From NCBI GenBank assembly GCA_004431415.1, contig QPMI01000530.1, forward strand, positions 62,001 through 126,000: a stretch of 64,000 nt of DNA, given 5' to 3'. Below are positions 1 to 58,330 of the stretch, one piece after another. Below the pieces are notes generated by a model that saw only the letters and a list, made by a program, of their open reading frames with translations, had not been told where the DNA came from and ran no database searches. This DNA comes from Cyanophora paradoxa CCMP329. Its lineage: Eukaryota > Plantae > Glaucophyta. The translations under genes and the position numbers were made by a program. Each line of letters starts with the position of its first letter. Position 1 is the stretch's first letter.

Positions 1-3000
1 TGGCCGCGCGCGTCGTATTGGCCGCGCGCGTCCCGTTGACGACGGATGTCCCGTTGAGGGCCTGGTTCGCGAGGCGGACGACGGGCGCGACCGTCCGCAC
101 GAACTCGATGGGGGGCCACTTCAGCAGGGAGAGCTTGGCGAGGGAGGAGACGACGCTCCTCGGGTTGCCCGACAGGATCGTCAGCACGTACTGGTTCCGT
201 GGGACCCACGTCGAGTCGACCTGTGGCCCCTCCAGCTCCACCTCGTACGCTGCCATGCGAGTTACATTACAGAAAGCCGCTGGCGGAACACTCGCAGCGC
301 GGCGGGAGCCGCGCACGCGACACGGTGAACGGATCCGTGTTGGCGAAGTACGTCCCGACGGGCGTCTTGACCGTCACGCGGACGAAGAGGCCCGTCGCGA
401 ACGCGTCCACTTCCGCCGCCCACCTCACGAAACCCGACGAGACTTCCTTGGGCGAGGTTGCGATGTTCTAGACATAATGTATCAGCTCGAGCGAGACGTC
501 GCAGAAACAAAGAGATGGCTGGAAGAGAAAGAGGCAAGTCGGACCTTGACGAGCGTGTCGGACTCGGCGTCCATCAGATCGACGGTGACGACCTGCGGCA
601 GCGACAGGCCGCGCGCGTACCACCCGATTTCCACGATCGCGCCCAACGTGATCGTGCCTGTTTCGCCGCCGTACAGCGCGGGTGCGTACACAATGACGTC
701 AGGCGAGACTGTGCCCATGATGGCCTCGATGTCCGCCGGCACGACCTTGAACGGATCGCTCTCAAGGAAGAGGTTCGTGGATATGTTCGGACCGAGCAGA
801 TCGACGGTCACTCGGTACATTCCGGTGGGGAAGTAGATCGGCAGCTCGGCGAGGCACAGTCCGATGTTCTGCGCGTCGCAGACGGTGAAGGCGTCGACGG
901 AGCCGTCGATGGGGAAGGCCTGGACGCGGGCCCTTCTGTAGACGGAGACGTCGCACGCCCACGAGGCCGAGACGGGCCCGCCGGCCACGACGACCGTCGT
1001 CCCGTCTGGGTACAGCAGCTGCGGCGGAGAGTCCGAGGCCTGCAGCGCGCATTCGTTGGTCGAACGTCGAAGAAGACCGAGAAACTACTTCAAAATCCAG
1101 GAATTAAAAAGACCTTGGGGGGCTCGGGGATGTAAGGCGCCGTGGGTACCGCGTTCACGAAGGCTGCGACAGCTTCATCAATATTTGAGAGAGAAAGTCG
1201 AGAGCGATCGCGAGCGCCAGTGCAGTTGTACCGTTCGCGAAGCTCGGCACACGGCGGAGGCCCCAGGCGATCAGGCCCGAGGGCCCTCCGACGTAGAAGT
1301 TGCCCGAGTAGAAAAACGAGGCGCGCGAGCCGGCGGCCGGCGGCGCGCCGGACGGGACGAGCTTCATCCAGCTCCCGAGCGGCACGTCGTAGATGAAGAG
1401 CTCCGAGGCCGCGACGGGCTCGTCCGCGGGGCCGTACCCGCCCGTGACGTAGACCTGCGCCTCGCGTGGGCAGGCAGCGCAGATCTCACCGATCTTTTAA
1501 CAAAGGCGAGAATGAAGAACCTGGGAGCCCGTGGAAGAGACCTGGACCGCCGCGAGGGCGCGCGGCGAGGGCGGTTCCCCGAATGCAGCCTCCATGACGA
1601 GCTCGCTGAGCGGCGGCTCGCCTGTCGCAACGGAAGCGTCCAGCCGTGCTAATACGAGCTCGTTGAAGAATTGCTGTGCGCCCTCTCCGGATGTCACTCC
1701 GCCGAACACGAAGAAGGGCGATGCGCCAAAGGCGCCGGGGCTAGCGGCGACGCCGACGCCAGTTCGAGCGGGGCTCGTGAAACGCGTCGTGGGCGCGACG
1801 AGCGACCATTGCAGCGAAGTTAGCTCGAAGGACCACGCGTCGGTAAAGCCTTGGCTGGCCGCGCCCGCGCCTCCCCTGCGCGACGGTGCAATCATGAGCG
1901 CAACAGATTCGGATGCGAGAAGAAATGATGAGAGCGCACGCGAGGAACAGAGTCGTGTCGCCGGCTCGGGCTAGAAGGGCGCCGTAGCGCGGGGCGGGAC
2001 CAGCGCCAGTGGTGTTGATGGAGGTCCAAGAGGAAGTGATCGTCGAATACGTGTGCAGGCTGCTCGTTGGCGCACCATCGCTTAGGCCGCCAAATACTGG
2101 ATGCAAGTCAGCGCGACAGAGGAAAATCTCGGAGACATCGAACAGAAATTCAGGAACCGTAAATGAGAGGTTCAGCGCAGGCAAAGGCGGCTTGCGCGGC
2201 CTGGAACTTGGAGGCGAGTCCGTCGCTCCAGGAGGCCCGCACGAAGCTGAAGGCTCTGATGGAGATAGTCGAATTGACGGTCAGACCGACCGTGAACAGA
2301 CTCGAGCCGAAGATGCAGGCGTGCTCGTAGCTGGCGCTCCCGGAGAGTACCGTCGTCCAGATGCCCCCGGGCGCGCTGCCCGGCTTCGGGTTTATGATTC
2401 TGCCGCGCAAGTGCATCAGCGCGCGGGGTCGGCAAGCTGTAAGAGAAGCACGCGCGAGCGCACTCGTCCATGCTCTCAAATGTCAGGCCCTGGATGAGCG
2501 AAGCGCCCGGCTCGCCCATCTCCACGGCCGCCCCCAGATTCACAGCCGCCTGCGATTGCAATCCGCTGTCAGCGCCGACGCAGCCATCCGCCGCCCCAAA
2601 TCCAAAGCAGCGAACCTCCATGCCGCGCGGGCCTCGGCCGAGGACGAGAGACACTGTGTCCGAGCGCCCCGCGGGGCTGCTCTGGACCTGCGCCAGCCGG
2701 CGCCGCCGCGCAGTGGCGACCGTGGCGTTCTGTCCGCTCGTCTCCGAGATGCGATCCAGCAGATAATCGATCCCGACAAGGCCGATGGTCGCGCGGACCG
2801 TTGCAGGGACGGGCTCTGCGGCTGCACACACGGCGGAAATAGAAGGAAGAGCGCTAGCCAAAACAGACGCCGAAATCGACGGGGCCTGACGCATGAAGGC
2901 GGTTCGATTCCCGTCGTCCCCGCAGCCAAAGGAGCGGGGGCCCAGTGACGGGGCGCCGAACGCCCACAGGCGGAAGTTCGATAGGGCAACCCATCCGCGA

Positions 3001-5971
3001 CGGGCGCCGGTGCCGCCCGTGTACACGGACACGTTCAGCAGGCCGGCCTCGATGCTCTCCCCCACTCGCGCCGACATCGGCACAGCCTCGGATACTGCCA
3101 GAGTCGCGTTCTGTCGCCACTCCACCAGCTCCTACGACGTGCATTTTGTTAAGTTTGGCCCAATACAATACAGAGACAGCTGTGCGAGAAGGGAAGATCG
3201 CCACTGACCCCCGTCGCGTCGGCGATGCGGAGCGATGCCACACCCCAGCGGCCCTCCGACATGCCGAGGCGCACCTGCAGGTACCGGGCCGGGCCCCCTG
3301 CGCCAGCCGTCAGCACGCGGCCGCCTAGATCCCATTTCACTGCGGCGCAGCGCACTCGCTGTCGCCCATCTCGCGGGGTCGTTCCAAACGAGCGTGAAGT
3401 TCGCGACCGCTTCGAAGTGGGAGGCCGGGTCCACTCCCGTGTCAACCGAGGCCTGAAGCCAAGGTCAGTCTGATTTAACATGCGGTCTGCTGTAAATAAA
3501 CCGAATTAATTCACGCACGGCCGCCATGCCCCGCTGCGGACTCTCGACGCTGATGCCATCCACAACGGCAAAGAGGCGGCCACTGAAGTAGGCATCGCCG
3601 TCACTCGCTCCCATCCTGAACAGCGCCGCCCGCGGGGGAATCCAAGCGGATCCTGCAAAGTCTTAATCAGCTTAATCTCAGCTTAATCGACACGTATTTA
3701 GACGGACCGCGGCTGTCGCGTAGGACGAACTCGAGGGCGGGATCGGAGCAGCCCGTCGCCGGGTCCTCGTCCATTAGGCAGGCAACAGCCGCGTACGTGC
3801 CTGCGCAGAGTCAGCTCTGCCATGAAATTCGGAAATTCGGAGCCCGAGGAACAAACGGCGCACCGCCGACTGAGAATTGGGGCGGGTTGAGGGAGACCGA
3901 GGTGATCTGCCGGCTTAGGGAGTTGCCCGCCGGGTTGCTCGCTGTGAAGGAGAGGACGGGGCGCATGTTGGCGACGGAGACAAGGCGAATCTACCGAAAT
4001 AGATAAGCGCAGATGCATTACATAAAAACAGGAAGCGCACCGTAATTCCCCATGTAAAACCGCCGACGATGTAATTAATGGGCAGCGATGATCCGATTTG
4101 GACCATTGCGGGCGGCTCGCCCGTAACGCGCGCCGTCCCCGGCTCGACCTCGAGCCGAACCACATGTGTGCCTATGACGAGGTAGAATTGGCGCGCCGTT
4201 GGGCCCGGACGAAGGACGATCTGCGACGGCTCAGAAGTGCAGCAAGCGACAGCTGCATAGATGACGAGCAAGCGCACGCTGTCAACCGGCCCACTGCCGC
4301 TGACCTCGGAAAAAACCGAGGTAATATCGACAACGGTACTGGGCTCGATCGCGCCCTCTAACACCGAAACGAGGCCGAGCCGCGGGCCGCCGCCGGCGTC
4401 GCCGCTGCCAATGGCGACGACGGCGTACGCACGGCTGGCGAGGTAGAAATCGAGCACGCGGCCGCCACCCTCGATCGCCGGTGTCTGCACCTGCATTTCC
4501 TGCGGCTCCTCTCCGGCACTGCTCGCCCGCAGGCTTGCGCGGTGGAAGCTGCCCGTGGTCGACAGGACGAGCACGTATTGCTCGTCAGGACTGACGGCGA
4601 AGGACTTGGGGCACACGTTGGGCATCTTGGCTGGCACGCTGGCCACGAGACCGGTCGAGTCCAGAATGTGGAAGTGCACGAGCCCCGTTCCCTCTCCGTT
4701 GCAGAGGGCGCCCTCCGCGTTGTCATCCGATTGGAGGAAGACCGCCCTCGAGCCGAGCCGCACCACCGCGGCCAGCACGATGAGCTTGCTGCTGCCGGCA
4801 GGAAGCGGCGGAAGCCTCTGAGCGCTGATCCCGCCGTCTTGCGCCACGAGCACGCGGTACAGGGACGCGTCGCGCGATCCTACGAAGATGACGGCGCGCT
4901 CGTCCGTGCCGCCGAGGTAGGCACCCGAGGACGGGCGCGGCAGCTCCGCCGCCGTCAGCGCGCCGCTGCGGCCGTCGGTCACGTTGAGCGCGACGAACGT
5001 GCGGTCGGCCTCGTCGCCTTCGAGCGCGACGAAGAACATGCTCTTGCCGTCCGTGAAGGCGGCCTTGGAGACGCCGCTCGAGGAGATCTCGATCGTCTTC
5101 AGCACGGCGTCGGACCCGGTCGTGCCCGCCATCAGCAGCACGGTGGCCCTCACGGGGCTGCTCGTCACCGCGACGCCCAGCGGGCCGCCGCCGGGCGACG
5201 TGGTCATGTGCGGGAAAGCGACCCCAGCGCCCATCGTCGCGTTCGGGTCCAGCGACAGGAGGACGCCGCCGTCCGGCAAGTTTATGCCTGCACACAGGGA
5301 TCGTGATCTAAACTGAATTACGCAATTTGAGAGGGAAGCAGACGCAGACCTGGAACGGGGACCCCCGAGTTTATGCTGCCCGTAGCGATGTACTTGAAGT
5401 TGGGGTTGGTCGCGACGCTGCCGTCGTACAAGAGCGTCATTGAGTAGACGGCCCGCAGATGGCCTCCCGAAACCAGAAGCAGCGTGTTCCGGGCAGCCGC
5501 AAGGGCGCCCGTGGAGGAGCCGTAATCGACACTGACGGAATCCTGGGCGTACTGAAGCAGCGCGCGGCGTAGCGTCTGCGCCAACGTTTCCGACGGCCTG
5601 TAGCCCGTCGATTCCTGAATTTGGGTTGCGATGGTCGAGTAAGGATCTGAAGCAGCGTCATTTCAGCTCATCGTTAGCGCAGACCGCTTGATTAAATCTC
5701 GAGATCGATGGACCGCACCAAGATCTGGATCGTAGACAATGGTCGCGAGGACGTTCTGCTCGATAGGCTCGCCGTAGAAGGGGTACGTGGGGTTCGCCCT
5801 CGGTGGCTCGCTAGAGTCCGGCTGAGATGCACTGTAAATGCCGGAGAGTAACGGCGAGGTTCCGGGCAGCGTTCCCAAGAGCGCAAAGAAAGTCTGAGAA
5901 CGTTTCGGTTATATATATGAATCGACAGCGAGGAAATCTATATGCTACTTATGAATTAAACAGTATCGCAC
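1..5971 (-). CDS. C-terminal exons of the giant gene: non-Kelch beta-propeller-like exon (~4040-5290), possible galactose-binding/F5-8-like jelly-roll segments, an RRRRL basic motif and further Kelch-like blades
   Basis: ORF 3915-5279 has WD/YVTN-like strands (PKSFAVSPDEQYVLVLS). RYLQVRL..WGVASLRI at ~3230-3290; ATARRRRLAQ at ~2690-2720; FTDAWSFELTSLQWSLV..FFVFGG at ~1690-1850. Domain identities are inferred. Confidence 0.55.
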
Positions 5972-8900
5972 CGAGGTGGCCAGCGCTTCCGACTCGAACG
6001 TGTAGGTGATTGTTACCTGGTTCATCAGACTGCGGGCGTCGGTTGTGCTTGAGCCAGAGTCGGGGGCGATCCCATCTTGAGTGATGACGGGCGCGGGGTC
6101 GAACGTTGCGTAGCCCATGAGTCGCGCAAGCAGCTCTTGGCCGCTGCCGACCACGGCCGGATTGTAATAGACCACTTCGGTCACGACATACTGCGCCGCA
6201 GCTGTGGTAAAGGGCGCGGACGAAACGCTTGGAGAAGTCCCAGCCGTGTTGCTGACTGAGGCAGTGCAGATGTACGTCGAGCTGGGGGATAGGCCCGTCA
6301 CGTCGAACGTCGAGAGAGCATCCGCGCGTCCCACTGCAATTAACGAGCTCCAACTGATTTGAGCGCCATTTGCTAGGGCGCAGCTCGCTGAGACGCTGCT
6401 GATCCATGCACCCCCATTGTACGCAAAGACTGCCGTCAATGTCGCGCCGTTGCGCTGCACGTTTGCGACCGACAACGAAGTGGGGCGCCACGGCGCCTCG
6501 GGAATCGTAATGAAAGCGAGCGAGAAGTTCGTGCGCGAGGTGCCGGCCGAGTTTGTGGCGTTCGCAAGGAAGGCATAAGTTGTGTTGGGGACGAGTCCTG
6601 TGGCCAAAAATGCCACGCGCACCGTGCCGAGACCAGGGACAACCGGAGCGGCGTCCGTCCACACAATAGCCGCTCCGAGTAGATCGGACGCGGGCGCCAA
6701 GGCACAGCTTGCAGCCACACGCGTGATGAATGCCCCTCCGTTATATCCCATCGTAATGTTCAAGGTCGCATTCCGCGGCTGGATCAGGGAAACGTCGAGG
6801 GCGACTGGCGGGACAGGGGGCTCTGGAATCGTGATGAAAGCGCTGCTCTGCGTATTCCTCGAGACGCCCGCCGAATTCGTGAAATTCGCTGAGCACACGT
6901 AGGTGTTGTTCGGAACAAGCCCTGTGGCGCTTGCAGTAGCGGAGGACGCGCCAGGAGGCGTGTTGACAAAACCGCCCCACACGGACATGCTTGGGTTAAC
7001 GTTGGCATTGACGACCAGCGCGCAGCTGAAGGTAGCGCGCGTGATTATGGCCCCACCATTGTAGCCGAAGTTTGCAACGAGAGTTGCGGAGCGCGGGAAA
7101 ATTGCGGTGACCGCAACTGAAGATGGCGCAGCTGCTGGCTCCGGTATGGTCAGGAACGACGAAGACGACGTGAGTGGAGAGACTCCAGCAGCATTCGTCG
7201 TGTTTGCAGAACATATGTACGATGTGCTTGGAACCAGGCCTAAGATGCTGAACTGAGCCATACTCGTGCCTTCAGACACATTGAGTCTGGCACCCCACAC
7301 CGATCCACTTCCAAAGCCGGATGGGCGACACGAAACAGAAGTCTCTGTAATCCACGATCCTCCATTATACGCGAATATGACAGTGACGGTCGCGTTGCGT
7401 GGGAAGATCGCTGAAACAATGACAGAAGAGGGAGGGTAAGGACGTTCGACACCTGTGTGCACATTCGAAGAATTGCTCCAGGAGGTTCCAGCAATGTTCG
7501 TTGCGTTTGCCGAGCAAACGTACGTCGTGTTCGGCCACAGCCCTGTCGCGTTCAGTCGCGCCACCGTCCCTGCCGCACCATCGACCACCGGCACGCTGCC
7601 CTGCCAGGTGACAGCTCCCTTGCTTGCAGTGACGCAGCTCGCCGACACGAGAGAGATGAACGAACCGCCATTGTACGCCAATGTCACAACGAGGGTCACT
7701 CCACGCGACACAATGTCCTCGAACGCAACTGAAGCTGGGGGCTGGGAGATCTCTGCAATTGTGATGAAGCGCTCCGAGCTTGTGCTGATGGATGTGCCCG
7801 CCGAGTTCGTCGTGTTTGCAGCACACAAGTAGGTCGTGTTCGGGAACAGGCCGACCACTGAAAGCACTGATTCTGCGTCACCTTCGGCAACGGCCGCTAC
7901 ATCGCCCCAGACCGCCGCGCCGTCGTCCGGCGTGCAGTGGGCGGTCGTCGTTGTGATCCAGGCACCGCCATTGTAGGCGAACGTGACAGTGAGAGAAGCA
8001 TTGCGTGGCTGAATGGCCGAGACGTTGACCCAGAGCGGCGCTGTAGGTGGCTCCGGGATGGTAATGAATGTGATGGATGAGTTTGTTGGGGAGGTGCCCG
8101 CATCATTCGTCGCATTCGCATCGCAAACGTACGTGGTGTTGGGCGTCATCCCGCTGACCAGGAAAGTGACAGACGTGTCGGTTTCAGGGTTGGGTACAGC
8201 AGTCGCGCCAGAGCCCTCCGTTGCTCCAGGTGTCTGCGGCAGGCACCGAGCCTGGATGGACGTGATAAACGACCCCCCATTGTAACCGAAGAGGACCGTG
8301 ATTGTGGCGTTCCGGGGCTGGATACCAGACATTTCGACCAACGCAGGTGCCGCGGCAGGCTCGATGCCAGAAATCACCGTGGCGGACGTGGTCGGAGAAG
8401 TGTCGACAGCGTTCGTTGCGTTTGCGGAGCAAACGTACGTCGTGTTCGGCCACAGCCCTGTCGCTTTCAGTTGCGCCACCGTCCGTGCCGCACCATCGAC
8501 CACCGGCACGCTGCCCTGCCAGGTGACAGCTCCCTCGCTTGCAGTGACGCAGCTCGCCGACACGAGAGAGATGAACGACCCGCCATTGTACGCCAATGTC
8601 ACAACGAGGGTCACTCCACGCGACACAATGTCCTCGAACGCAACTGAAGCTGGGGGCTGGGAGATCTCTGCAATTGTGATGAAGCGCTCCGAGCTTGTGC
8701 TGATGGATGTGCCCGCCGAGTTCGTCGTGTTTGCAGCACACGTGTAGGTCGTGTTCGGGAACAGGCCGACCACTGAAAGCACTGATTCTGCGTCACCTTC
8801 GGCAACGGCCGCTACATCGCCCCAGACCGCCGCGCCGTCGTCCGGCGTGCAGTGGGCGGTCGTCGTTGTGATCCAGGCACCGCCATTGTAGGCGAACGTG

Positions 8901-11900
8901 ACAGTGAGAGAAGCATTGCGTGGCTGAATGGCCGAGACGTTGACCCAGAGCGGCGCTGTAGGTGGCTCCGGGATGGTAATGAATGTGATGGATGAGTTTG
9001 TTGGGGAGGTGCCCGCATCATTCGTCGCATTCGCATCGCAAACGTACGTGGTGTTGGGCGTCATCCCGCTGACCAGGAAAGTGACAGACGTGTCGGTTTC
9101 AGGGTTGGGTACAGCAGTCGCGCCAGAGCCCTCCGTTGCTCCAGGTGTCTGCGGCAGGCACCGAGCCTGGATGGACGTGATAAACGACCCCCCATTGTAA
9201 CCGAAGAGGACCGTGATTGTGGCGTTCCGGGGCTGGATACCAGACATTTCGACCAACGCAGGTGCCGCGGCAGGCTCGATGCCAGAAATCACCGTGGCGG
9301 ACGTGGTCGGAGAAGTGTCGACAGCGTTCGTTGCGTTTGCGGAGCAAACGTACGTCGTGTTCGGCCACAGCCCTGTCGCGTTCAGTCGCGCCACCGTCCC
9401 TGCCGCACCATCGACCACCGGCACGCTGCCCTGCCAGGTGACAGCTCCCTCGCTTGCAGTGACGCAGCTCGCCGACACGAGAGAGATGAACGACCCGCCA
9501 TTGTACGCCAATGTCACAACGAGGGTCACTCCACGCGACACAATGTCCTCGAACGCAACTGAAGCTGGGGGCTGGGAGATCTCTGCAATTGTGATGAAGC
9601 GCTCCGAGCTTGTGCTGATGGATGTGCCCGCCGAGTTCGTCGTGTTTGCAGCACACAAGTAGGTCGTGTTCGGGAACAGGCCGACCACTGAAAGCACTGA
9701 TTCTGCGTCACCTTCGGCAACAGCCGCCACACCGCCCCAGACTGCCGCGCCGTCGTCTGGCGTGCAGTGGGCGGCCGTCGTCGTGATCCAGGCACCGCCA
9801 TTGTAGGCAAACGTGACGGTGAGAGAGGCATTACGGGGCTGAATGGCCGAGATGTTGACCCAGAGTGGCGCCGTTGGCGGCTCCGGGATGGTGATGAACT
9901 CCAGCGACGTCATTCCAAGCGATGTCCCGGCCACACTCGTTAGATTCCCAGTGCAAGCGTACGTCGTGTTCGGCCAGAGACCCGTCGCCGTCAGCACTCC
10001 AAATGTCGTGCTCTCCGGCACAAGCACAGCCTCCGAGCCTGTCCATGTCGCAGTGGCTTCTCCGGGCGGCCCACAGCTCGCAGCAAATAGAGTGATCCAG
10101 GCACCGCCATTGTAGCCGAACGTCAGAGTCACTGTCGCGTTTCGCGGCTGGATTGCCGAGATGTTGACGAACACGGGCGGGGCCGGGGGCTCGGAGATCG
10201 TGATGAAGGGCGCCGAAGCATTGTTTAGAGACGTGCCAGCAGAGTTCGTGGTGTTTGCGGTGCAGATGTACGTGCCATTCGGAATTAGCCCCACTACCGG
10301 GAAGATGGCTTGCGTGTCATATGGGACAACAGTGGCGGATCCTTGCCAGACAAAGTCCCCGCCTGCTGCCAGCATGCACGACACTGCCACATTGCTGATC
10401 CAGGCGCCGCCATTGTAGGCGTAGAGAACAGTCAGCGTCACATTGCGAGGAAGGATATTCGAGATGAGAACAGCGGGTGCGGTTGGCGGCTCCGGGATGG
10501 TGATGAACTCCAGCGACGCCATTCCAAGCGATGTCCCGGCCACATTCGTTAGATTCCCAGTGCAAGCGTACGTCGTGTTCGGCCAGAGACCCGTCGCCGT
10601 CAGCACTCCAAATGTCGTGCTCTCCGGCACAAGCACAGCCTCCCAGCCTGTCCATGTCGCAGTGGCTTCTCCGGGCGGCCCGCAGCTCGCAGCAAATAGA
10701 GTGATCCAGGCACCGCCATTGTAGCCGAACGTCAGAGTCACCGTCGCATTTCGCGGCTGGATTGCCGAGATGTTGACGAACACGGGCGGGGCCGGGGGCT
10801 CGGAGATCGTGATGAAGGGCGCCGAAGCGTTGTTTAGAGACGTGCCAGCGGAGTTCGTGGTGTTTGCGGTGCAGATGTACGTGCCATTCGGAATTAGCCC
10901 CACTACCGGGAAGATGGCTTGCGTGTCATATGGGACAACAGTGGCGGATCCTTGCCAGACAAAGTCCCCGCCTGCTGCCAGCATGCACGACACTGCCACA
11001 CTGCTGATCCAGGCGCCGCCATTGTAGGCGTAGAGAACTGTCAGCGTCATATTGCGAGGAAGGATATTCGAGATGAGAACAGCGGGTGCGGTTGGCGGCT
11101 CCGGGATTGTTATGAACTCCAGCGACGCCGTACCAAGCGATGTCCCGGCCACATTCGTTAGATTCCCAGTGCAAGCGTACGTCGTGTTCGGCCAGAGACC
11201 CGTCGCCGTCAGCACTCCAAATGTCGTGCTCTCCGGCACAAGCACAGCCTCCGAGCCTGTCCATGTGACAGAGGCTTCTCCGGGCGGCCCGCAGCTCGCA
11301 GCAAGTAGAGTGATCCAGGCACCGCCATTGTAGCCAAACGTCAGAGTCACCGTCGCGTTTCGCGGCTGGATTGCCGAGATGTTGACGAACAGTGGTGGAG
11401 CAGGGGGCTCGGGGATCGTGATGAAGGGCGCCGAAGCGTTGTTCAGAGACGTGCCAGCGGAGTTCGTGGTGTTCGCAGAGCAGATGTACGTTGTATTAGG
11501 GATGAGTCCTGCTACAAACAGGACAGCGCTGTACAATTCTGGAGCGACGTTGACCGAGCCTTGCCAGGCGCCCAAGCCTGTGCTCGCATCTGTGCAGCTT
11601 GCCTCCACTCTCGACACCCAAGCACCTCCATTGTATCCGAAGCTGACGAGCAAAGTCACATTCCGTGGTTGAATGTTCAAAACGTCGATGGCCGCCGGCG
11701 CTGCAGGCGGCTCGGGGATGGTCGTGAAAGCGATCGATGATGTCGCGGCAGTCGTAGTAGTCTCTGTCGAAGCGTTTGCGGTGCACGTGTAAGTCGTGTT
11801 GGGGATGAGATTCGAAGCCCCCAGAAACGAGACGCCGGCCCGATCATCTACATCAGCGCTTCCGCTCCAGTGCGGCGCTTCGCCTGCAGACGGCGCGCAA

Positions 11901-29900: not shown

Positions 29901-32900
29901 GCTATTTCGGAAGGCATCTAATCCTGACCACATAAGGCCGCCATTCACGTCGTAATCGCGCCCGGCCACCCAAACTTTACCTCCGTAGCTGTGCAGGACC
30001 GTAAACGGACTGCAGAGAGATAATCGCAAAGTTGCAGCCACGAACTATGTCATCACTGCCGCGGCCAAAGCGTATGCGTATCAGACGTGCCCGCAGCTTT
30101 AAAGCTACGGTTTGGTTTGTGAAGGACGCGCACCATGGAGGTTGGTTTGGGATGGCATCGGCTCCAGATCCACACGCTCGGTCACTGCGCAGCTCGGCTT
30201 AGACACAAAGAGGGCGAGAAGACCAGATGTAGGGCCGCTGACATGAAACAGAATAGCTCCAGAAGTTTTCAGCATACAAGAATGTCCTCCTATTATAGCC
30301 TCCGGAGCAATAGATTGTACGAAACTCGTCCCTATCGCGGGTATCATGAAGATTAATCATGCGGAAAGAGGCGGGGCGATGACGCAACCAAGTACAGGCC
30401 GAATTTTGCCCGAAAATCGCCGACGTCAGATTCCTGGTCGCCGTGAGGTTCGTCCATGTCCTAGATTCGACGTCGAAGACCAAGACCGCGTCTGTGAAGA
30501 AGTCCACTCCATCCGTTGTGTACATTCCGCCAACGCTTATTAACTTGACCCGACCGTTTTCGTCACGGAAGAGGGTGAAACCTTTATAATAGAGACTCCA
30601 GTTCTCGATATCTGCCGGGGTCGCAGGCACCGGGACCAGCGGTCGCGATGCGATCCGCTCAACATCGATCCGGTACGATTCCGCTGCAGGCCGCGAGTCG
30701 GTTCAAAAAGCAAAAACGGGCTATGAATTCGGAAAACAGCGCACTGAAAGTCGTGAAATTCCGCACAGAAACGATGTTTGGGGACGTTCCCCATGAGTTG
30801 GTCGCATTTGCGCTGCACATGTACGACGTGTTCGGCAGTAGGCCGGTAACGAGGAAATAAGCAGTTCCACTCATGTGCGGAATGCTGGACGCGGCGGTCC
30901 AGACCGCAGGTCCGCCGGCTGTCAGCGAGCAGCTCGCCGCGGCCATCGTGATGGGCACCAAGTTCGTAAATTCGAAGGCCACATTCAGACGGGCGGACCG
31001 TGTCCCTATGTCTGCAACGTGCAACCAGGACAGCGACGGAACGCCCGACCACGTGCCATGCAGCGATCCATTGACGACGACGGCGTACGAGTTCACGGTT
31101 CCAGCCTCCCCGAACGAATCTTTTCCGCCTGCTGCGACCCTGCGAGCGAAGGAAAAAATAATAATAATAGATAAGGTCGAGGCAGAAGAAAATGGAATTC
31201 ATTTTAGGCGTGCAAAGGAACGAACGCAATACAGCTGAAGGATTCCGATGCGAACGCCGACCATTCCAGCGGAAAGGCCGACCGGTAGACGGCGGGCAGG
31301 GGACTTGGCATGCCGTTGAGAGTTCCGGGGCAGCCGGCCGCCACGGGGGTGGCCATGCAGGTCTCCCCCGTGTAGAGACGCGTGATGACCGCGCGCTGCA
31401 GGATCATCAGGTACGGTCCGCAAGCACCGAAGCAGGATTCCGTTGTGTAGCGACTCTGGGGGGTTCCTCCCGTGACCCACTTCCACGAATAGAGTATCCT
31501 GAGGTCGCGCTGCTGTAGGACTTTGGTCCCCGTGACCGGATCGAAGCCCGTTGAGAGGTCCAGGTAGCTGCATCGACGTCACGGATGACTCGGTGAGTGG
31601 CGGAATGCTTCTTATCAAACGGTGAACGAATTCAAAACTTGTAACGCACATGATGAAGGTCGTGCCTGCGCCGTTGCCCCCGCCAGCGTACCTGGCCGGC
31701 GGTACCACATCGAAGTCAGCACCCGCCCCGGCCCACCACGCACTAGATCTGTAGCTCAACCTCGACTCGCGCGCGCACCATTTGGAGCCGATTCGAACGC
31801 AGGGTGCTCTACTGTAATCCAATCTAAAATACCCGATGGAAGGGGCGTTCACGGACTCCTGGTTCCAACCGAACTCCGGACTGGGGATTTCCAGTTAGGG
31901 AAATAACTTCGAATATAAGCGCTCGGTAACTAATAGCATTGGCGTAATCGAGAGGAGGGCACCTCCACCAGTGCAGACCGGCACCCGCAGTATCGGTCGT
32001 GGCCTGCTCAGAATCAGCGCCGCGGTCGGCGCCATAAGCTACCCATTTGACATCTAGCTATATACCCTATATATATAGAGTGGTGCAACTCACCCAGAAT
32101 ACCCCGCGATAGTACGTCACGCAGTGCAGATGAATATCTGTGAGGAGAAGAAGGAGCGAGCTGCTAAGCCAGCTGCAAGAAGGGGCCTGGACGAGGATTG
32201 AGCACCCTGAAAGGAGGGCGCGAGGTCGGTGCGCGTCGTGAGAGCCGTGTCGAATGACCAAAAAGCGGTAGTTCTCAAATTATTAGTAGGGCTTGGATTT
32301 CCGCCGAGACAATAAATCTGGGAGGGCGCAGGGATTGCGGGAAGCGATCATGAATTTCGGAACTTCGAATTTTTCGATGGGAAACGACTTGCCGTCTCCG
32401 CCTCGTCCCACGCGCACGATGTTCCTTGCAACGGGAGCGGCAGGGTCACGGCCGGCGTGCTCCACGAGTCGGAACCGATGTCGTAGAGCTGGACAGTGTT
32501 GACTCGGTAACGATTAGCGCTACCCCCCGTCCCATTCATGCCGCCTGCACATGTGTTCTTGTGAGTAACGTGAATCGTGCAGCTCATATAGATATGAATC
32601 CGTTATCCGGGCCATACCGACGATGAGGAACTGCTGGCGGCCGGCTGGGTCGCGGAAGAGGACACCAGCTGGATAGAGCAACGGGCCAAACGGGGCAGTT
32701 GAGCGCCTTTCGTAGTCCAGTTGGTGCGCTGCGGGCGAGTCTAAATACACATGTTTATACCACAGAAACCCTAAACGCACAGTAGGTCGTGAAGTTGGCG
32801 GACGAAACGCTCCGTGATGTCTCCACCGAATTGCTTGCGCTGGCCGTGCACGCGTATGTCGTGTTGGGCAGCAGGCCGTAGGCGTCGAGAGAGGCGACTC

Positions 32901-35900
32901 CGGCCTGGCCTGTGATGCTCGCAAGCCCGGTCCACGCGACTGCGCCCGAGGGCTGATGCACGCAGCTGGCTGCGACGCTCGTGATCGGAACGCCGCCGGT
33001 GTAGTGTAGGGCAACGACCAGACTCGCGGAAGTCCGACGAATGTTGCGGACTGTCACCGAGAGGACGACAGGCGCCTCGTCGGCAAGGTACGTGCCTGTG
33101 GAAACGTTTCGAAAATGTCGCGGTGCAACATGGCAGTCCGGTGCAGCTGCTCGCACCGTTGAATCGGATCGTTCGTGCAGTCCGAACAGCCGTGCCCGTG
33201 GTGTAATCGAATCCGGTGGCAACCCAAGTCGTGCAAGAGGCAGAGTCCGTGCCGTACGCCGAGTTCCGCAGGTTGAAGATCGGCCCGACGTTGCTTGACA
33301 GCGTCAAGACGCGGCCAGCTGGGCGCGTAGTTAGCAGCGACTCAAAGCGAGCTTGCGGGGCTGAAGTAGGGCTGCGCACTTGCTGGATCGATGAGCTGCG
33401 GGCGCGCGTTGCGAACCCAGTAAATTAACATACTACCGCATGCTCCGAACACGCTCCCCTCCTCGGGAATTATGCCGCTCAGCGTTGCGGCAAGGCGCCA
33501 GGACTTAGTGTTTGATGGCAGCGAGAGGTCGATTTCGCTGCAAGAATGTGAGGTTCATTGTAAAAGATAAGCGATAACGCACTATATTGCTGCGGAAGGC
33601 GACGAAGCACCCCAGCCGACATACCACTTACTCCCTGCGCATACATAATCGATATTTGATCCAGATTTGGATACGCCACGCGCGCGAGAGCGAGATCGCG
33701 CACCCATCCGGACGTTAGGGGCATAAGGTTTGAGATGCGTAGCAAATGCAGCCGAGTTACCGACCGTCTCCTCGACCCATCCATGCACGTCATCCCAACT
33801 GCGGCGGAATCTAACGGTCGCTGTGCAATCGACGCCAGCTGCAGGGCAAGGTGCAGCTCGCGCACCGCACTAGCTTGCCGTTGCTTGAGCCCGCTACGAC
33901 AACCTGCGCATGCAGTCGCTCGTGTTTAGCAATGGAGAAATTAAACACGTGCACTTCGGCAAAATACGTTACACACCCAAACATATTTGCCATGAACGGT
34001 TGTAGCTGGTTTTACAAACGGCATCAGATCGCATACTTGAATCTTGCAATTGCATCAGCGCGGATCTTACCATGTCCAGAAGGGTCCAAATCGTAGCCAT
34101 TAATGTGCGTCCAACCACCAGAGAAGCCGTAGGTGACATTGTGCATCCTTGACAGGTCGTCCCTGTAAGCGAAACTGACGGGGAATCGCGCGAAGAACCC
34201 CGATAAGCCTGTTCCGCCAGTTCCGCCTACCGCGCCCTCAAGTTGCTCACCCGCAAAAATGAACTACAAGCTCAAGCACGTACCGGTACAGTAGACAAAC
34301 CCAGTCGTCGATTCGTCCTGCAAACTACTTTAATGGCGTATGACATCAACACGAGTAGAATGACTGACCCATGAACAAGCCATATCCGAACCCGGATTGG
34401 GCAGTGTGGCCGTTGCATTCGACCACGAATCGCTATTCACGTCGTATATGTAGATGTTGCTCTGTTTCGTCGATACACCAGCAATCAACGTTTGTCCGCC
34501 GATCACCGCCAGCTTCCAGCCACCCGTTCCGCTCCTGAAAGCAACGCCTGCTGAGTAGGTCCGTCCCAGAAAAGGGCCCGACGATAGCTCCGTCGCTTCC
34601 AGGTAAGGGCTCGCTGTGGATAAGCATAAGAGAGGGGATCCAGTTCAGATAACCTGTCACTGCAAGCGTGTGCGCACCGGTCGTAAAGGGAAGCGACGGA
34701 GAACTCTGTGGAGACGTGCCCGCCGAATTCGTCGCCGTCGCCCGGCACGTGTACGCCGTTGCCTCTAGCAGTCCCGTCGCGAGGACGGAGACCGAAGAGA
34801 TCCCGGCGCCGGCGCTGACTGAGCCTGTAAAGTCGGTCGCGCCGCCGGTCACGCGCGAACACGTCACTGCGGCGCTCGTGATCCACGCGCCACCGTTTCC
34901 CCCGAAGGTGACGTTCACCATCGCTGAAACCGACCAAACCCTTGTAATGTTGACCGCGACAGGCGCAGCGGGCGCTTCGGCCGTCGTTGTAAACGGGGAG
35001 GACGTGTTGCTCGGGCCCGTCCCCGCCGCGTTGCTGGCATTCGCGGCGCAGATGTACGTTGTGTTCGGCGAGAGGCCCGAAACGGAAAGGACCGCAGAGG
35101 AGCCGCTGGCGGCTACGGAGGCAGTCCAAACTGCATCCATGCCGATCTCGTTTGCAAGAGAGCAGCTGGCGGACGCCCCGCTGATTGCCGCTCCCCCGTT
35201 GCCGCCAAATGTCACCGTGAGCGTTGCCGTGCGCGCGGCAATGGCGCTGACTGCCACCCGAGCCGGCGCGTCGGGCGGCTCGGCAAAGGTTGTGAATGGC
35301 GCCGACGTGTTGCTCGGCGAGGTACCAGCCGACGTCGTGACATTCGCAGAGCAAAGGTAGGTGCTGCCGGGATACAGACCGACAACCGAGAAGCTGGCGG
35401 ATGAGACGCCAGGATTCACGGCAGCAGATTCGCCCCAGACAGCCCCGCCGCCCGAAGAGAGCCTGCAGCTTGCCGCGACCAGGTAGATCCACGCCCCGCC
35501 GTTATCTCCGAAGATTACTGTCAGCGTCGCGTTCCGAGACGTGATACCTTCGACGGTCACCAGCGGCGCCGCGGGCAACTCGGCCGCCGTCGCGAAGACG
35601 CCTTCGGCAGAGGGCGAGGTCCCGACAGAGTTGCTGGCGTTCGCCCGGCAGTTGTACGTGGTGTTGGGCAGGAGGCCGGTGAGGGTGAAGTTGGCCGAGG
35701 ACGCCCCCGGAGACACGGCCGCGGAGAGGTCCGCCTGCAGCGAGCCGGTCGCGCCGCTCCAGCAGCTGAGGCTCGCGGTCGTGATCGAATCCGCGCCGTC
35801 GAACCCGAATGCGACGGTGACCGTCGCGTTGCGCGGCCAGATGGTCGTCGCGACGACGGACGCGGGGGCCGCCGGCGCCTCCGCCGGCGTCTTCAGTGCG

Positions 35901-38894
35901 AAACTGTAGTCGCCGGACGTGCCGTAGGAGTTCGTGGCGTTTGCGGAGCACGTGTACGTCGTGTTGGGCCAGAGTCCGCTTGCGCTAAAGGTGGCCCAGC
36001 CCGCGCCGCCCGCCACGGACGAAGAGGCTGTCCAGGCCAGGCCGCCGTCGTTCGAGGAACAGCTCGCCGCGGCCTCCGTGACGGCGGCGCCGGCCGTGCT
36101 TGTGTAGCGGAAGAAAACCGTGACCGACGCCGAGCGAGAGGCGATGCTGGACAAGGAAACGTAGTGCACTGTTGGCGTGTCCCCGGTCGCGTAGGAGCCT
36201 GCACAAATGCATCGAAGCACATGAATAAAAGCGCCTCACGGCCATACAGGCCCGAGCAGAGTGCGCACCGCTGATCCTGAAGGTATGAGCGGATGCAATG
36301 CTGCCGGTGGCGAGCCCTGCCGCCGTGATCCTGCATGGACCCATCTCATGATCAGCTTGCGGCACTTCTGCGCAGGTCGCTCAAGCCATGCCGCGCGCGC
36401 GCACGCGAGGCAGGAGGAAGCGTCGGAGCCGTAGGCGCCGCCCGCGAGGTCGAAGGCCGGGCCATCCACGACCGCGCCCGGCGTGGCGTCGCTCGCGACG
36501 ACCGCGCCCACTGCGCACGTGCGACCACCGATATCAGCTTTACACGCGAGAACATTTAAGGATAAGGAACGCACGCTGGGGGTCGATGAGGACGGGCTTG
36601 AACCCGCGCCCGGCCCACAGAAGGAGCTCCCCGCAGGCCCCGACCACGCTCCCGTTCATCGAGGCGGTCGGGATGGAGGGCAGGGACGCCGCTGTGCGCC
36701 ACGCGCGGCTGCTGCCGGCCGCGTCCAGGTCCGTCTCCCTGCACGAGCGTCATGTGTTGAACCTGTCATTTAATTTGTCGCGCGATGGCTCACAGGATCG
36801 TTCCGCCTGATGTGACGGCTTGATCCGGCAGGACGTACCACTTGTTCGCTGTTCGCGAGGGCGGCCGTCAGCGTCGCGTTCGATCGCGAGCGGCGGGACG
36901 AAGATCTAGGTCTAGAAGCTCAAGCAAAGGCAGTGAGAGCGGAAGCACCGATCCGGGCGCTGACGACGTTCGCGCCGAAGGCCACCGACGTTACGGAGGC
37001 CTGCTGCGCCCAGCCCGTGCCAGCCGACCACCTGCGATCGCGAGCGCCAGCCCCAGCAGGTGAGGCAGCGACAGAGAATCCGCGCGGCGAGGACCGAAGC
37101 CGAACCGCCATGTTGCGCCGTAGGTCGGGTCGGGGTTCAAGTCTGTCGGGCCTTGGCCCCCCGTAACCTGAGCGCGCTTTCAGCCCGGGATTGCAACCCG
37201 CCCAAAGCGCCCCAACTCACCCAGACGAATCCTCCGAAGTGCGCGAGGGCGTGGCAGCAGAGGGGGGAGGGCATGGAGGGGAGGGCGGAAATCGCGGAAA
37301 TGTCCAGCGGCACGCTCCAGAACGCCGCCTCATAGGAATTCGCGTCGCTGACGCCGCCTGCGCCGCAGCCGAGTCGGAAACTCGCCATCGCGCCAGGGCG
37401 TGCTTATATTTAGACTCGAGGGGATCGCCATGTGCGCGCGCGCGGACCGCTGCAGTAGATGAAAGACGCGCCGTCCCACGCGCAGGCGATGCCGCGCGTG
37501 GGGGAGGGCAGCGAGACGGGCGCAGCGGTCCAGACGTCCGTGTCGACGTCGTAGATCTGCGAGCGGCTTGAGAACGACTGCGCTGAAAGAAAGGGCGGGG
37601 GGAAGGGCGGGGAGAGAGGGGAAGAGGCTCAAGGGTGAGGGGTGGGGCGGGGGGGGGGGAGAGGAGGGGGGGAGCTCGAGGGAGTAAGCGGGGCGGGGGG
37701 GGGGGGGGAGAGGGGGGGAGGAGCTCGAGGGAGTAAGCGGGCGGGGGGGGGGGGGAGGGGTAAGCGGGGGCGGAGGGCCTAGGTGTGAGAACGAGGGGAA
37801 GGGGAGGGGGCGGAAGGGTGCGGGAAGAGGAGAGGGAAGCGGGAGGGGAATGGGAGCGAGGAGGGGTGGGGGGCGGGGGGAAAGGGATAGGGGGATCCGG
37901 GGCGAGCCTGGATGAGGAAACGGGAAGGGAATGGGGGCGGGGGGAGGGAAGAGGAGAAGGGAGGGGGCGGGAGGGCGGGGATATAGGGAGGGGGGGGAGG
38001 GAGGGGGGGGGAGGGGGGGGCGGAGCTTAAGGCTGATCATGAGAGGTACGGTGGCAGGGGTGGGAGGTGGCAGGGGTGGGAAGGGCGAGTGGGAGAGGGG
38101 GGGGGGGGGGGGGGGGAGGTGGCCATGGGGGGGGGGGGGGCGGGGAGGGGGGGGGCAAGCGAGCCTGGATGTCGGAGAGGTGGGTCCAGCCGCTGCTGCC
38201 GTCGTCCACCGCGCCCCCGAACACGGCGAGCCGCCAGCCGCCGCCGCTCTTGAAGAACGCCCCGGCCGCGGCCCACCTTGCGGTCCACGCGCCCGTGGCG
38301 AGCTGGACCGTCTCCAATCCGTACGCCGCTGTGTGAAAGCTTTCTTTTCAGCGAAGCCCAAGAAGGGCGAGCAGAGAGGGGGGTCGCGTTATTTGACGGG
38401 AGGAGGGCCGGCCCGCGGGCGGGCGCGCCTGTGGTGAACGGGGAGGAAGAGTTGGAGGGAGAGGTCCCGACGGCGTTCGTCGCGTTGGCGCTGCACGAGT
38501 ACCTGAGGGCGCCGGCGCGAGTTTAGATTCGCCGCAGAGCAGATCGGAGAGCGGCGCAGGACAGGGCGCACGTGGTATTCAAGGCGAGGTCCGTCGCGCT
38601 GAGCAGCGCCTGCGCGTCGCCCGCCCCGACGGCGACCTGCCCCGTCCAGTCCACGGTCCCGCCCTCGCTCCTCTCGCAGCTGGCGGCGACGCTTTGGACG
38701 GGCGAGCCGCCATCGAGCCCCAGAGCGACTGTGACCGTCGCGGTTCGGAGGCGGACGTTGCCGACGGAGACGGAGGCTGGGGCGTCTGGGGCCGTTTGCC
38801 CCGCCGCCAGGTGCACCCAAGCGAAGAGGAAGAGGAGGAGGGGGAGGAGGATGAGAGGACGGGGCCGCGGCCTCCGTCTTGCGGCGGCCCCCGT
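1..38894 (-). CDS. Giant multi-exon secreted/surface protein: signal peptide, then FN3 + 13 x [Kelch-like beta-propeller + FN3 domain(s)], a 19-FN3 stalk and a C-terminal propeller/jelly-roll region. Roughly 9,000+ aa; 3' end beyond the window.
   Basis: The same motif series recurs 13 times on the minus strand (AGVLFRN..KL.V.GG..YD...W; CAWD...IYC.GG; FW..P...LP.MP...H; W...GW; RIG.KWY; E.DL...W; G.VLGACGD.LL...P..IDP; YGSD.FTC; R.NG), each followed by an FN3-like unit (R.A.L...F.YNGG..I....ASC...W.G....GL.PNTTY.C.ANATN..GTS...FTT). A signal peptide RRRPRPRPLILLPLLLFLFAWVHLAAG/QT lies at ~38800-38880. Exons join in frame across GT/GC-AG introns wherever checked, and the frame is open at position 1. 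The start codon is uncertain. Confidence 0.85.
5972..12027 (-). CDS. ~6-kb exon encoding 19 tandem FN3-like domains (stalk)
   Basis: ORF 5945-12043 contains 19 units of ~100 aa (P..P..V....I.PRNA.L...F.YNGG.WI...ASC...W.G...GL.PNTTY.C.AN.TN.AGTS...F.TIPE). Acceptor cgcag|GGTTCTAC at 12027; donor TCG|gtgcga at 5972. Confidence 0.92.
7495..9900. repeat. Near-identical 915-bp tandem repeat (3 FN3 domains per unit, ~2.6 copies)
   Basis: Matching shadow ORFs recur at 915-bp offsets (8013/8928/9843; 8184/9099; 8298/9213) and the DNA is nearly identical between units. Confidence 0.92.
9870..11490. repeat. Near-identical 609-bp tandem repeat (2 FN3 domains per unit, ~2.7 copies)
   Basis: Shadow ORFs recur at 609-bp offsets (10161/10770/11379; 10443/11052; 10310/10919). 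Confidence 0.92.
12099..13410 (-). other. Kelch-like propeller module 13 (multi-exon)
   Basis: VLEIKPVAPGSFAGRQDVAGVLFRNATGGYKLLIIGG; ACSWDEKTNGYVWCSGG; ELDLASPPPKSW; LIGACGEYVLW; YGGFGSDFFTCTTC. Confidence 0.8.
13469..15348 (-). other. Propeller module 12 (13851-15348) + FN3 exon (13469-13792)
   Basis: GAGVLFYNETGARKVLVVGG; SCAWDDGATIFCTGG; EIDLAASSPKQW; YGSDTFTCTMC; 324-nt phase 1-1 FN3 exon. Confidence 0.8.
15413..17283 (-). other. Propeller module 11 (15785-17283) + FN3 exon (15413-15727)
   Basis: GTAFYNGTGGLKLLLAGG; CAWDEDPHGRIYCA; EVDLTVSGPRTW; VLGTCGDYLL; YASDYYTCTT; 315-nt FN3 exon. Confidence 0.8.
17343..18979 (-). other. Propeller module 10 (17726-18979) + FN3 exon (17343-17654)
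   Basis: PAGVLFRNVSSGLQLAVIGG; CAWDHASTIFCTGG; EIDLAASGTKSW; VLGACGDMLL; YDSDQFTCTLC; 312-nt FN3 exon. Confidence 0.8.
19048..20781 (-). other. Propeller module 9 (19424-20781) + FN3 exon (19048-19359)
   Basis: AAMFRNGTSGLKMLLTGG; CAWDENPSGFIYCS; VLGACGERLVV; YASDELTCTT; 312-nt FN3 exon. Confidence 0.8.
20837..22506 (-). other. Propeller module 8 fused, without a junction intron, to its FN3 domain (~20837-21150)
   Basis: GAAVFRNGSSSSGVKILSSGG; MCTGGYNG..FWRYP; LGACGDYLLW; FVSDSFTCSMC; SILVNATYPVPDTP read through without an intron. Confidence 0.75.
22565..24465 (-). other. Propeller module 7 (22949-24465) + FN3 exon (22565-22885)
   Basis: AGALLQNETGRFKLAVVGG; FWRFPTSFASRTDLPNMP..MEGH; ELDLGVAPKSW; VLGTCGGLL; 321-nt FN3 exon; GC donor at 22948. 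Confidence 0.8.
24535..26796 (-). other. Propeller module 6 (24928-26796) + FN3 exon (24535-24864)
   Basis: PVLFRSSNDSGGFKMAFVGG; DENPAGYIYCL; EVDLSLPFGSKTW; LLAACGDLLL; YGSEAFACLTC; 330-nt FN3 exon. Confidence 0.78.
25936..26169. repeat. Intron in propeller 6 with degenerate direct repeats
   Basis: gaaagaaccggcac x2, acgccatagct(t/c)ggagcg x2 and aaactat x4. Confidence 0.65.
26868..28519 (-). other. Propeller module 5 (27249-28519) + FN3 exon (26868-27182)
   Basis: GAGVLFQNATSGFQLAVIGG; CAWDFSQLGWVYC; WSEATGW; RIGSRWF; VLGACGDYLLW; YDSDAFSC; 315-nt FN3 exon. Confidence 0.78.
28578..30683 (-). other. Propeller module 4 (28971-30683, divergent) + FN3 exon (28578-28895)
   Basis: TLFRDENGRVKLISVGG..FDVESRTW; IYCSGG; WSPETGW; VLGACGDGFLMW; 318-nt FN3 exon. 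Confidence 0.75.
30745..32728 (-). other. Propeller module 3 (divergent) fused, without a junction intron, to its FN3 domain (~30745-31070)
   Basis: PAGVLFRDPAGRQQFLIV; YDIGSDSW; CAWDE; IYCLGG; RIGSKW; CFGACGPYLM; FASESFSC; AVVVNGSLHGTWSGVPS read through without an intron. Confidence 0.75.
32781..34613 (-). other. Propeller module 2 (33157-34613) + FN3 exon (32781-33095)
   Basis: AGVAFRSGTGGWKLAVIGG; YIYDVNSDSW; GFVYCT; EIDLSLPSNTKSW; VFGAC; YGTDSASC; 315-nt FN3 exon. Confidence 0.78.
34678..36198 (-). CDS. 1521-nt phase 1-1 exon encoding 5 tandem FN3-like domains
   Basis: ORF 34433-36220 contains five GL.P.TTY.C.A...N..GTS units. Acceptor tgtgcag|GCTCCTAC; donor ACCG|gtgcgc. Confidence 0.9.
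36269..38328 (-). other. Propeller module 1
   Basis: AAAGAFFKSGGGWRLAVFGG; IYDVDTDVW; CAWDGASFIYCS; FWSVP..LPSMPSPLCCH; VVGACGELLLW; YGSDASSCLAC; FRISG. Confidence 0.82.
37557..38164 (-). repeat. ~600-nt GC-AG intron of G-run low-complexity DNA (G-rich on +) with degenerate internal repeats
   Basis: Poly-G tracts; ggagctcgagggagtaagcggg repeated at ~37671 and ~37720; a copy of the donor junction (gcgagcctggatg) at ~37902 matches 38159. Confidence 0.75.
38429..38894 (-). CDS. Signal peptide and first FN3 domain of the giant gene (two exons; intron ~38502-38571)
   Basis: PLILLPLLLFLFAWVHLAAG-QTAPDAPASVSV...LALNTT|YSCSANATNAVGTSPSNSSSPFTT. Confidence 0.8.
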
Positions 38895-39299
38895 CGCCCC
38901 GCCCCGTCGGATGGTGCCGAGTGGCGCCGCTCGCCGCTGGACGGGGAATGTACATGCGGTACGCGCAGCTATAGCTCGAACCCGAACGAGGCGTGCTCTT
39001 TTACGAGCGCGCTCGAGCTCGAGCTCCGTACCGCAGCTGCAGCTGCAGCCGCATGCATATGTCTCGATCGCCCCTGCGCATTCGACGATAAGCAAGCGCT
39101 CAATTATCGCACTCAGGGGAGGGGGGGCGGGGGGGAGGGGGGGGGGGGGGGGCGGTGGGAAGGAGGGGGACGGCGCGGGGAAGCGGGGCGGGTGGGGGTG
39201 GGGGAGTTAATTAAAGAGAAGGGAGCGCGGCGGAGAGGAGGGAGCGGAGAAATGGGGGGGGGAGAAGGGGGGGCATTAGGCCTGCCACTTCCAGGCTGG

Positions 39300-49744: not shown

Positions 49745-49792
<48 letters not shown>

Positions 49793-50286
49793 CAGGGACG
49801 GCGCCCCTTTGCGGGTGGGGCCCCAGGACCAGGGGCGCGCGTTCCTCGTGGGTACAGAGTTCCCCGCCCTCCTCGACGTCCGCGACGCCGTATCCCCCGA
49901 CTCCGAGGCGCGCCGTACCCCCCTCCCTCTTTCTTTCTCCCCCCCCCCCCCCCCCCCCTGTCTTACGGCCTCGGCAGCCGCGGCGGGTCGTGCTGATGCG
50001 CTCGGGGCCGGGCGGGCCCCTCGCGGAGCTGTGCAGGAACCTCCTCGCCCAGTTCGGGCCCCTCGCCGCCGCCGTCGAGTCCATAGGCGTCGTCGTCCGG
50101 CGGCGCCGGGCCTCGCAGCCGTCCCACCACAGCCACAGCCACCACCACCACGCCCTCCACCACGCCCCTTCGCCGCTCGCGGTCGCCCCCGTGGCCAGCG
50201 ATGCGGATGTGTGGCGCCTGTCCGACGGCGACGAGCTGCTCGTCGGGTTCGCCTCGGGATCCGCGGGGCGCCGCCTCGTCCTGTAG
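44903..50286 (+). CDS. TKL-type Ser/Thr protein kinase with Pro/Ser linker, two ubiquitin-like domains, a Big_5/SbsA-like Ig domain and a C-terminal KHA-like domain
   Basis: Spliced kinase motifs: [92 protein letters not shown]: [49 protein letters not shown]. Ig: [46 protein letters not shown]. Tail: [13 protein letters not shown]...[13 protein letters not shown]. Stop TAG at 50284-50286. Confidence 0.85.
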
Positions 50287-58315: not shown

Positions 58316-58330
58316 CCCGTCGCGCCTCCG
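58047..58330 (-). CDS. Duplicated terminal exons of the beta-helix gene (tail-anchor-like end); 5' partner unknown
   Basis: ALQASLQAGLALAQPPTDSRPQ|LAVGQGE...PAFTAAVSFIALFLRARTRTV* keeps frame and the tail of copy 1. Confidence 0.45.

Follow-up and report, generated by a model that had tools for sequence, protein, structure and literature searches.

The window analysed here, a stretch of 64,000 nucleotides of GC-rich, eukaryotic DNA from Cyanophora paradoxa (contig tig00021015), carries on its minus strand, from position 38894 to position 1, a giant gene whose spliced model comprises 141 exons and 140 introns and reads through 9,540 codons without a stop (approximately 990 kDa). The evidence from the sequence supports one intact gene, for which we infer a single transcript, that would encode one secreted, glycosylated protein with 13 Kelch propellers set between FN3 domains. 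We consider it fairly probable that this protein is a many-ligand surface receptor or adhesin of at least 1 MDa, comparable to megalin or ROS1, at the surface of a wall-less cell; its anchor, its expression and its ligands are the inferred parts of this reading. No literature on the gene or on its architecture was found.

Gene model and integrity of the gene

The gene model was built with a self-trained splice model and was refined by leave-one-out profile-guided spliced alignment, in which the profile was taken from the other twelve modules. Database searches and folding were carried out on single exons or on public proteins, and the joined spliced model was used in local scripts only. The spliced exons total 28.6 kb and require neither a stop nor a frameshift, either of which was named in the preliminary description as something that would speak against the gene; alternative genetic codes were considered and are unnecessary for the open frame. 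The frame is still open at base 1, so the 3' end of the gene lies beyond the window. The introns have a median length of 64 nt (45–105 nt in 133 of 140), their donors are GT in 132 cases and GC in eight, and 69 of them begin with GTGCG. Introns in the C. paradoxa genome have a mean length of 86 bp and number 9.2 per gene, and the short, numerous introns of the model are typical of this genome (PMC6704402).

The gene limit had been placed at 38894, where there is no in-frame ATG and hence no start codon. The start is likely to be a small upstream exon near 39081–39032 that is spliced to the signal-peptide exon; this probable first coding exon (39032–39081, minus strand) offers candidate ATG codons at 39081, 39058 or 39054 and a donor, GTACGG, at 39031, and the public model g17158 begins in it. 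The weakest exon calls are those of propellers K3 and K4, the latter with several weak splice sites and putative micro-exons, two of which, of approximately 10 nt each (30055–30046 and 29715–29706), are required to keep the alignment. The sole long intron (38164–37557, 608 nt, GC donor) lies within K1 and shows low-complexity poly-C/poly-G sequence when read along the coding strand. At this intron the public model is spliced wrongly and loses blade 1 of K1. The FN3 arrays are free of introns (exons 12027–5972, 6.1 kb, and 36198–34678, 1.5 kb), and elsewhere an intron occurs about every 150 nt.

The public annotation fragments the gene, which is consequently invisible in the public proteome; the pieces seen, g17155, g17156 and g17158 (EukProt C. 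paradoxa tig00021015_g17155, tig00021015_g17156 and tig00021015_g17158), are 96–100% identical to the model. Three points would agree with several adjacent genes, or with a gene that is intact yet silent or has recently died, and in either case with no single working giant protein: the annotation lists separate genes, RNA support was not found in the runs tried, and forcing a splice model is always possible. The splice model, however, is not forced: 79 of the 95 intra-propeller introns fall at alignment positions common to at least three modules (in 2,000 random trials the mean was 0.5 and the maximum 7), one such position is common to all 13 modules, and 48 of 62 junctions of the model recur in independent public gene models, so that shared positions and recurring junctions both lie far beyond chance. 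The 24 border introns between propellers and FN3 domains measure 52–100 nt, whereas genes in C. paradoxa lie 770 bp apart on average (PMC6704402); neither a promoter nor a terminator would fit at the module borders. No second or internal signal peptide is present in the 9,540-residue model, and the public models begin and stop in the middle of domains, with g17156 by itself joining five propellers. A paralog, g23140, repeats the sequence of propeller, FN3 array, SEA-like pair and further propeller, which likewise speaks for one gene. Besides the 28.6 kb of uninterrupted exon, the youngest repeats of the FN3 stalk have a pN/pS of 0.28 (p 0.0005), which reveals purifying selection. For the 609-bp stalk unit, pN/pS values were set aside because the compared stretch extended past the duplication; the codon differences counted are 15 synonymous and 11 non-synonymous over approximately 300 codons. 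A separate DNA contig, which may be from the same strain, matches positions 201–6,200 without a difference and extends about 3.7 kb past the window, and the 18 DNA studies that contain the region probably represent one strain and do not count as independent support. Four probable RNA runs contained nearly none of the words from 26,000–35,900, and three RNA runs gave no contig on 201–6,200; since contigs show presence, not absence, expression of the gene may be weak or conditional. Taken together, a split, silent or dead gene appears improbable, and the single secreted multi-propeller protein claimed in the preliminary description gains support from the frame, the signal peptide and the sequons, but none from RNA in the runs tried.

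Domain organization

The order along the protein is a signal peptide, one FN3 domain, K1, five FN3 domains, K2–K12 each with one FN3 domain, K13, 19 FN3 domains and a set of post-stalk domains, all on the minus strand. The signal peptide (38799–38877; basic n-region, hydrophobic core and small-residue cleavage site) is the only hydrophobic segment of the 9,540-residue model. It is followed by FN3 domain 1 (38429–38798), by K1 (36269–38328, including the 608-nt intron) and by FN3 domains 2–6, which occupy a single intronless exon (34678–36198; PF00041, E 6.8e-19). The propeller–FN3 units are then K2 and FN3-7 (32781–34613), K3 and FN3-8 (30745–32728, without an intron between them), K4 and FN3-9 (28578–30683, the least certain exon calls), K5 and FN3-10 (26868–28519), K6 and FN3-11 (24535–26796), K7 and FN3-12 (22565–24465, public protein P0001), K8 and FN3-13 (20837–22506, again without an intron between them), K9 and FN3-14 (19048–20781), K10 and FN3-15 (17343–18979), K11 and FN3-16 (15413–17283) and K12 and FN3-17 (13469–15348, public protein P0004). 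K13 (12099–13410) and the stalk of 19 FN3 domains (6194–12027), encoded by a single 6,056-nt exon, complete the array.

The signal peptide, the 13 propellers and the 36 FN3 domains that had been counted beforehand are thus all found in the spliced model, the FN3 domains being arranged as 1 + 5 + 11 singles + 19. They are Thr/Ser/Ala-rich, 35 of the 36 contain exactly two Cys, and they hold 114 N-x-S/T sequons (approximately three each) compared with 28 in the propellers, which agrees with the earlier picture of sequon-rich, Cys-pair FN3 domains. The stalk matches PF00041 at E 2.5e-23, and the domains belong to the FN3 family even though individual copies are divergent.

The 19 domains of the stalk stand as first described, but the stalk is not terminal: about 1,550 further residues follow within the window. 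Two putative ferredoxin-fold, SEA-like domains (5350–6193) come first, in a low-confidence model built on a paralog (pLDDT 50) that contains two beta-alpha-beta-beta-alpha-beta units; its structural matches are ferredoxin-like, with Z of 7–8, and include the Gpr126 ectodomain, but are unspecific. A probable beta-propeller of another type (4041–5287), which serves as a lead only, has no Pfam match and a sequence homolog in the paralog only. The unassigned beta-rich region that follows (2464–3990) closes with a stretch that bears a basic RRRRL motif and may be a third SEA-like domain and a protease site. A 14th, conventional-looking Kelch stretch (1232–2399) matches PF24681 on two exons (E 5e-5 and 2.5e-3); it gives no match to the HMM of K1–K13 and lacks their signature. 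Ig-like domains (1–1039) reach the edge of the window and are 27% identical (E 1e-15) to the membrane-side ectodomain of a paralog, g16628.

Structure of the propellers

The 13 propeller modules are 306–344 residues long, with pairwise identities of 25–43% (median 35%). The structure of K9 was predicted from public protein P0001 together with an alignment of the exons of the other modules and of paralogs, and it contains 24 strands in six blades with a 1+3 closure (pLDDT 89, pTM 0.90). Foldseek, VIA-align and Atlas each place six-bladed Kelch domains at the top of their rankings, LZTR1 among them (Z 29.9; 286 residues at rmsd 2.6; 16% identity), and Kelch structures align across residues 3–315 of the model, blades 4–6 included. 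The structure prediction and search suggested in the preliminary description therefore give, for K9, a six-bladed Kelch propeller. The new propeller family that had been considered is not supported in structural terms: all six blades superpose on ordinary six-bladed Kelch structures.

In sequence, GG is found in 13 of 13 modules in blade 1 and in 12 of 13 in blade 2, and W is invariant in d1 and d3, so that both the geometry and the sequence motif place the modules in the Kelch superfamily. A profile of the blade 1–2 exons matches KLHL12 and KEAP1 (E 1e-8 to 1e-13); one alignment behind this kinship had fragments on the wrong blades and served that point only. The motif is degenerate in blades 3–6; of the blades 1–3 first noted as Kelch-like, blades 1–2 keep it. 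Relative to the known six-bladed Kelch propellers (LZTR1, KLHDC2/3/10, plant specifier proteins and NanM/YjhT), the fold, the blade number and the closure are the same (TM 0.75–0.80), whereas the modules described here are only 13–17% identical, are extracellular, lack the GG motif in blades 3–6, contain four invariant Cys and occur 13 to a chain.

Blades 4–6 have no Pfam or PDB sequence match, and a separate signature had been noticed in them. An HMM of this signature, searched against 1.84 billion representatives, retrieved C. paradoxa proteins, five in number and encoded at three loci, namely this gene and two paralogs; the remaining match (P0005, a bacterial RCC1-like protein) is spurious and due to repeats, and neither BLAST nor an HMM links it to the model. 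The signature was not found in the PDB, the 90% database or metagenomes, and no relative of single-propeller length was found in the 90% database by a search that is blind to long proteins. The signature is real and lineage-restricted but is carried by a Kelch fold rather than a new one; as judged from these searches, with glaucophyte sampling thin, it marks a Cyanophora-restricted, diverged Kelch subfamily.

Four Cys are invariant across the 13 propellers. The first pair lies on the neighbouring strands a2 and b2 and the second where blades 5 and 6 end on the bottom face, a placement in the model that makes two disulfides plausible.

Variation of the top face

The BC and DA loops, which form the substrate face of Kelch propellers (PMC8154269), have an identity of 0.22 among the 13 modules and a mean length range of 9.2 residues (maximum 26), compared with an identity of 0.39 and a mean length range of 1.4 for the bottom-face loops and an identity of 0.42 for the strands. 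The divergence is greatest in the top-face loops, as expected from the distinct binding faces that had been proposed. In most propellers the long top-face loops vary more than the short bottom turns, and for this reason the variation fits binding diversity without proving it. Both chain ends of the predicted propeller exit from the bottom face, and the FN3 spacers would therefore leave the top face free.

The same face bears on whether the protein is a tethered multi-enzyme, with catalytic propellers (compare NanM/YjhT mutarotase, galactose oxidase and plant specifier proteins) whose substrates would be extracellular glycans. Enzymatic Kelch propellers rank 2–4 in the structural search, a weak NanM Pfam match was obtained (E 0.0026, far below the cut-off), and a few polar residues around the mouth of the pocket show partial conservation (His 9/13, Arg 12/13, Tyr 10/13, Ser 12/13). 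However, the only invariant polar residues are the four Cys and two Asp at bottom-face turns; across the 13 modules no invariant acid, His, metal-ligand or catalytic set is present on the top face, the galactose oxidase C-terminal domain is lacking, and the identity to enzymes (13–17%) equals that to non-enzymes. A catalytic role is thus very doubtful.

Paralogs in Cyanophora

The propeller signature also occurs in tig00021717_g23140 (P0002; E 4e-24) and tig00020961_g16628 (P0006; E 9e-5), both of which are unstudied predictions. The former shares with the giant gene the FN3 type and the order of propeller, FN3 array, SEA-like pair and further propeller, with 41% identity after the stalk; it differs in a stalk of five FN3 domains and is known as a fragment only. 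It looks like part of another giant gene of this family, whose further propellers and C-terminus are probably encoded by adjacent models on tig00021717. The latter is 2,265 residues long and combines a signal peptide with one propeller of the subfamily, a Ser-Pro linker and Kre9/KNH-like Ig domains; several membrane helices close to its C-terminus form a multipass region, and no homolog beyond itself was found. It has the propeller type and the Ig-like domains in common with the giant gene, from which it differs in having one propeller and no FN3 domain.

Origin of the array

All 24 border introns are in phase 1, and two propeller/FN3 borders have no intron. The propeller–FN3 unit is a class 1-1 cassette, and the 24 borders derive from two ancestral introns through tandem duplication of one cassette and not from 24 independent events. 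Class 1-1 modules have been presented as typical of extracellular proteins in animals, and their shuffling has been claimed to be restricted to animals (PMC8001218); the phase-1-bounded modules of this gene, with borders that amount to two ancestral introns, bear on this claim.

Equal phase would also allow any unit to be skipped in frame, and the gene could then yield many shorter isoforms instead of, or besides, the full chain. Against this, introns of approximately 64 nt generally favour retention over skipping, tandem duplication of a single unit produces equal phase by itself, and two borders lack an intron; we attach little probability to a gene of skipped cassettes.

The array is best regarded as one chain that would have grown by tandem duplication of the phase-1-bounded propeller–FN3 unit. 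The module tree is star-like and mostly unresolved, with K3+K4, K8+K13 and K9+K11 as supported pairs, and together with the 35% identity of the modules this indicates that the propeller array is old. The stalk contains in-frame tandem duplications of two-domain units (609–612 bp) and of a three-domain unit (915 bp), with 89–98% nucleotide identity between duplicates. Judged from these copies, the intronless stalk is still changing length by recent in-frame duplications, for which unequal crossover inside the exon would be the route. An assembly artefact behind the stalk repeats was considered and is unlikely because the copies differ by 2–11% with a synonymous excess.

Comparison with known receptors and proposed function

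The ectodomain of ROS1/Sevenless, with nine FN3 domains and three YWTD propellers (PMC11743138), has the same alternating layout of propellers and FN3 domains, but is an animal protein with three propellers of the YWTD type, whereas here there are 13 or more of the Kelch type. Megalin (LRP2) has eight propellers with differing ligand preferences (PMC11145282), and megalin/LRP1 offer the best functional analogy, without homology; their YWTD-EGF and LDL-A modules were not found here. No kinase, YWTD, LDL-A or EGF Pfam match was found on the scanned exons and public pieces, in a window that lacks the C-terminus, and the protein belongs to neither the ROS1/Sevenless nor the LDL-receptor family. 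Attractin and MEGF8 also carry extracellular Kelch propellers, and PF24981 matches P0001 (E 4e-15 summed over modules). These proteins combine one or two propellers with CUB, EGF and PSI domains and are not known to carry an FN3 array. The scanned exons and public pieces gave no match to a CUB, EGF or PSI domain, and the protein described here is not a member of this group. With 13 Kelch propellers in one extracellular chain, the protein has more propellers than the giant receptors compared (megalin eight, ROS1 three) and uses a different type of propeller.

In the function that we favour, the protein would pass through the secretory pathway, become heavily N-glycosylated and be displayed at the cell surface, where it could engage many external ligands at once. 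The propellers would be attached by their bottom face between stiff two-Cys FN3 spacers, each presenting its own surface of BC and DA loops, and the stalk would raise the propeller array off the membrane, with the SEA-like and Ig-like domains nearer to it. From the usual size of an FN3 domain, the 19-FN3 stalk would be roughly 70 nm long. Breadth and avidity across many propellers may help the cell to detect or retain bacteria, particles or other cells. The ligand of dROS1 binds FN3 rather than the propeller, and its ectodomain is folded over (PMC11743138), so that straight beads on a string are one possible shape only.

The part of the protein inside the window (9,540 residues) has no membrane helix, and this, together with the dense sequons and the Thr/Ser/Ala-rich FN3 rods, would also suit a secreted or shed structural glycoprotein without signalling, such as a surface coat, mucocyst content or tether filament, in which the propellers are knobs for self-assembly or cross-linking. 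Cyanophora has no cell wall and has mucocysts (PMC6212826), and the RRRRL motif and SEA-like domains could permit release. A bulk protein, however, should be well expressed, yet an RNA contig was not found in the runs tried; structural repeats usually homogenize, whereas the propellers are 35% identical and the stalk repeats 93–100%; and g16628, the paralog with the same last domains, is membrane-bound. Since this Ig-sharing paralog ends in a multipass membrane domain, an anchor is expected beyond the window, most likely also multipass, and a purely structural role seems unlikely.

Of the multivalent adhesin or receptor with 13 faces that had been put forward, the variable top faces are seen, while function, surface location and disulfides stay at the level of prediction. 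If expressed and anchored, the surface receptor would be a convergent giant multi-ligand receptor in an early-branching, wall-less relative of plants. Read furthest, it would be an independent, megalin-like receptor of multiple specificity, with 13 ligand-distinct Kelch propellers made by animal-style class 1-1 duplication, a membrane signalling or channel domain and perhaps cassette skipping, belonging to a glaucophyte innate-recognition repertoire; we consider this full form unlikely. Because the gene offers 13 naturally occurring versions of a single Kelch scaffold that could form disulfides, it also provides a set for studying how top-face loops determine specificity.

Upstream sequence

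Upstream of the gene, positions 39200–41000 contain many short repeats of the GCAGCT/CTGCAG type and a 7-bp tandem array (40378–40436), a possible promoter or repeat remnant. Further upstream lies a direct repeat of approximately 4.5 kb (46269–50777 and 53821–58317, period approximately 7.55 kb), with blocks of 94, 93 and 82% identity and without Kelch or FN3 matches, which resembles a duplicated repeat or a mobile element.
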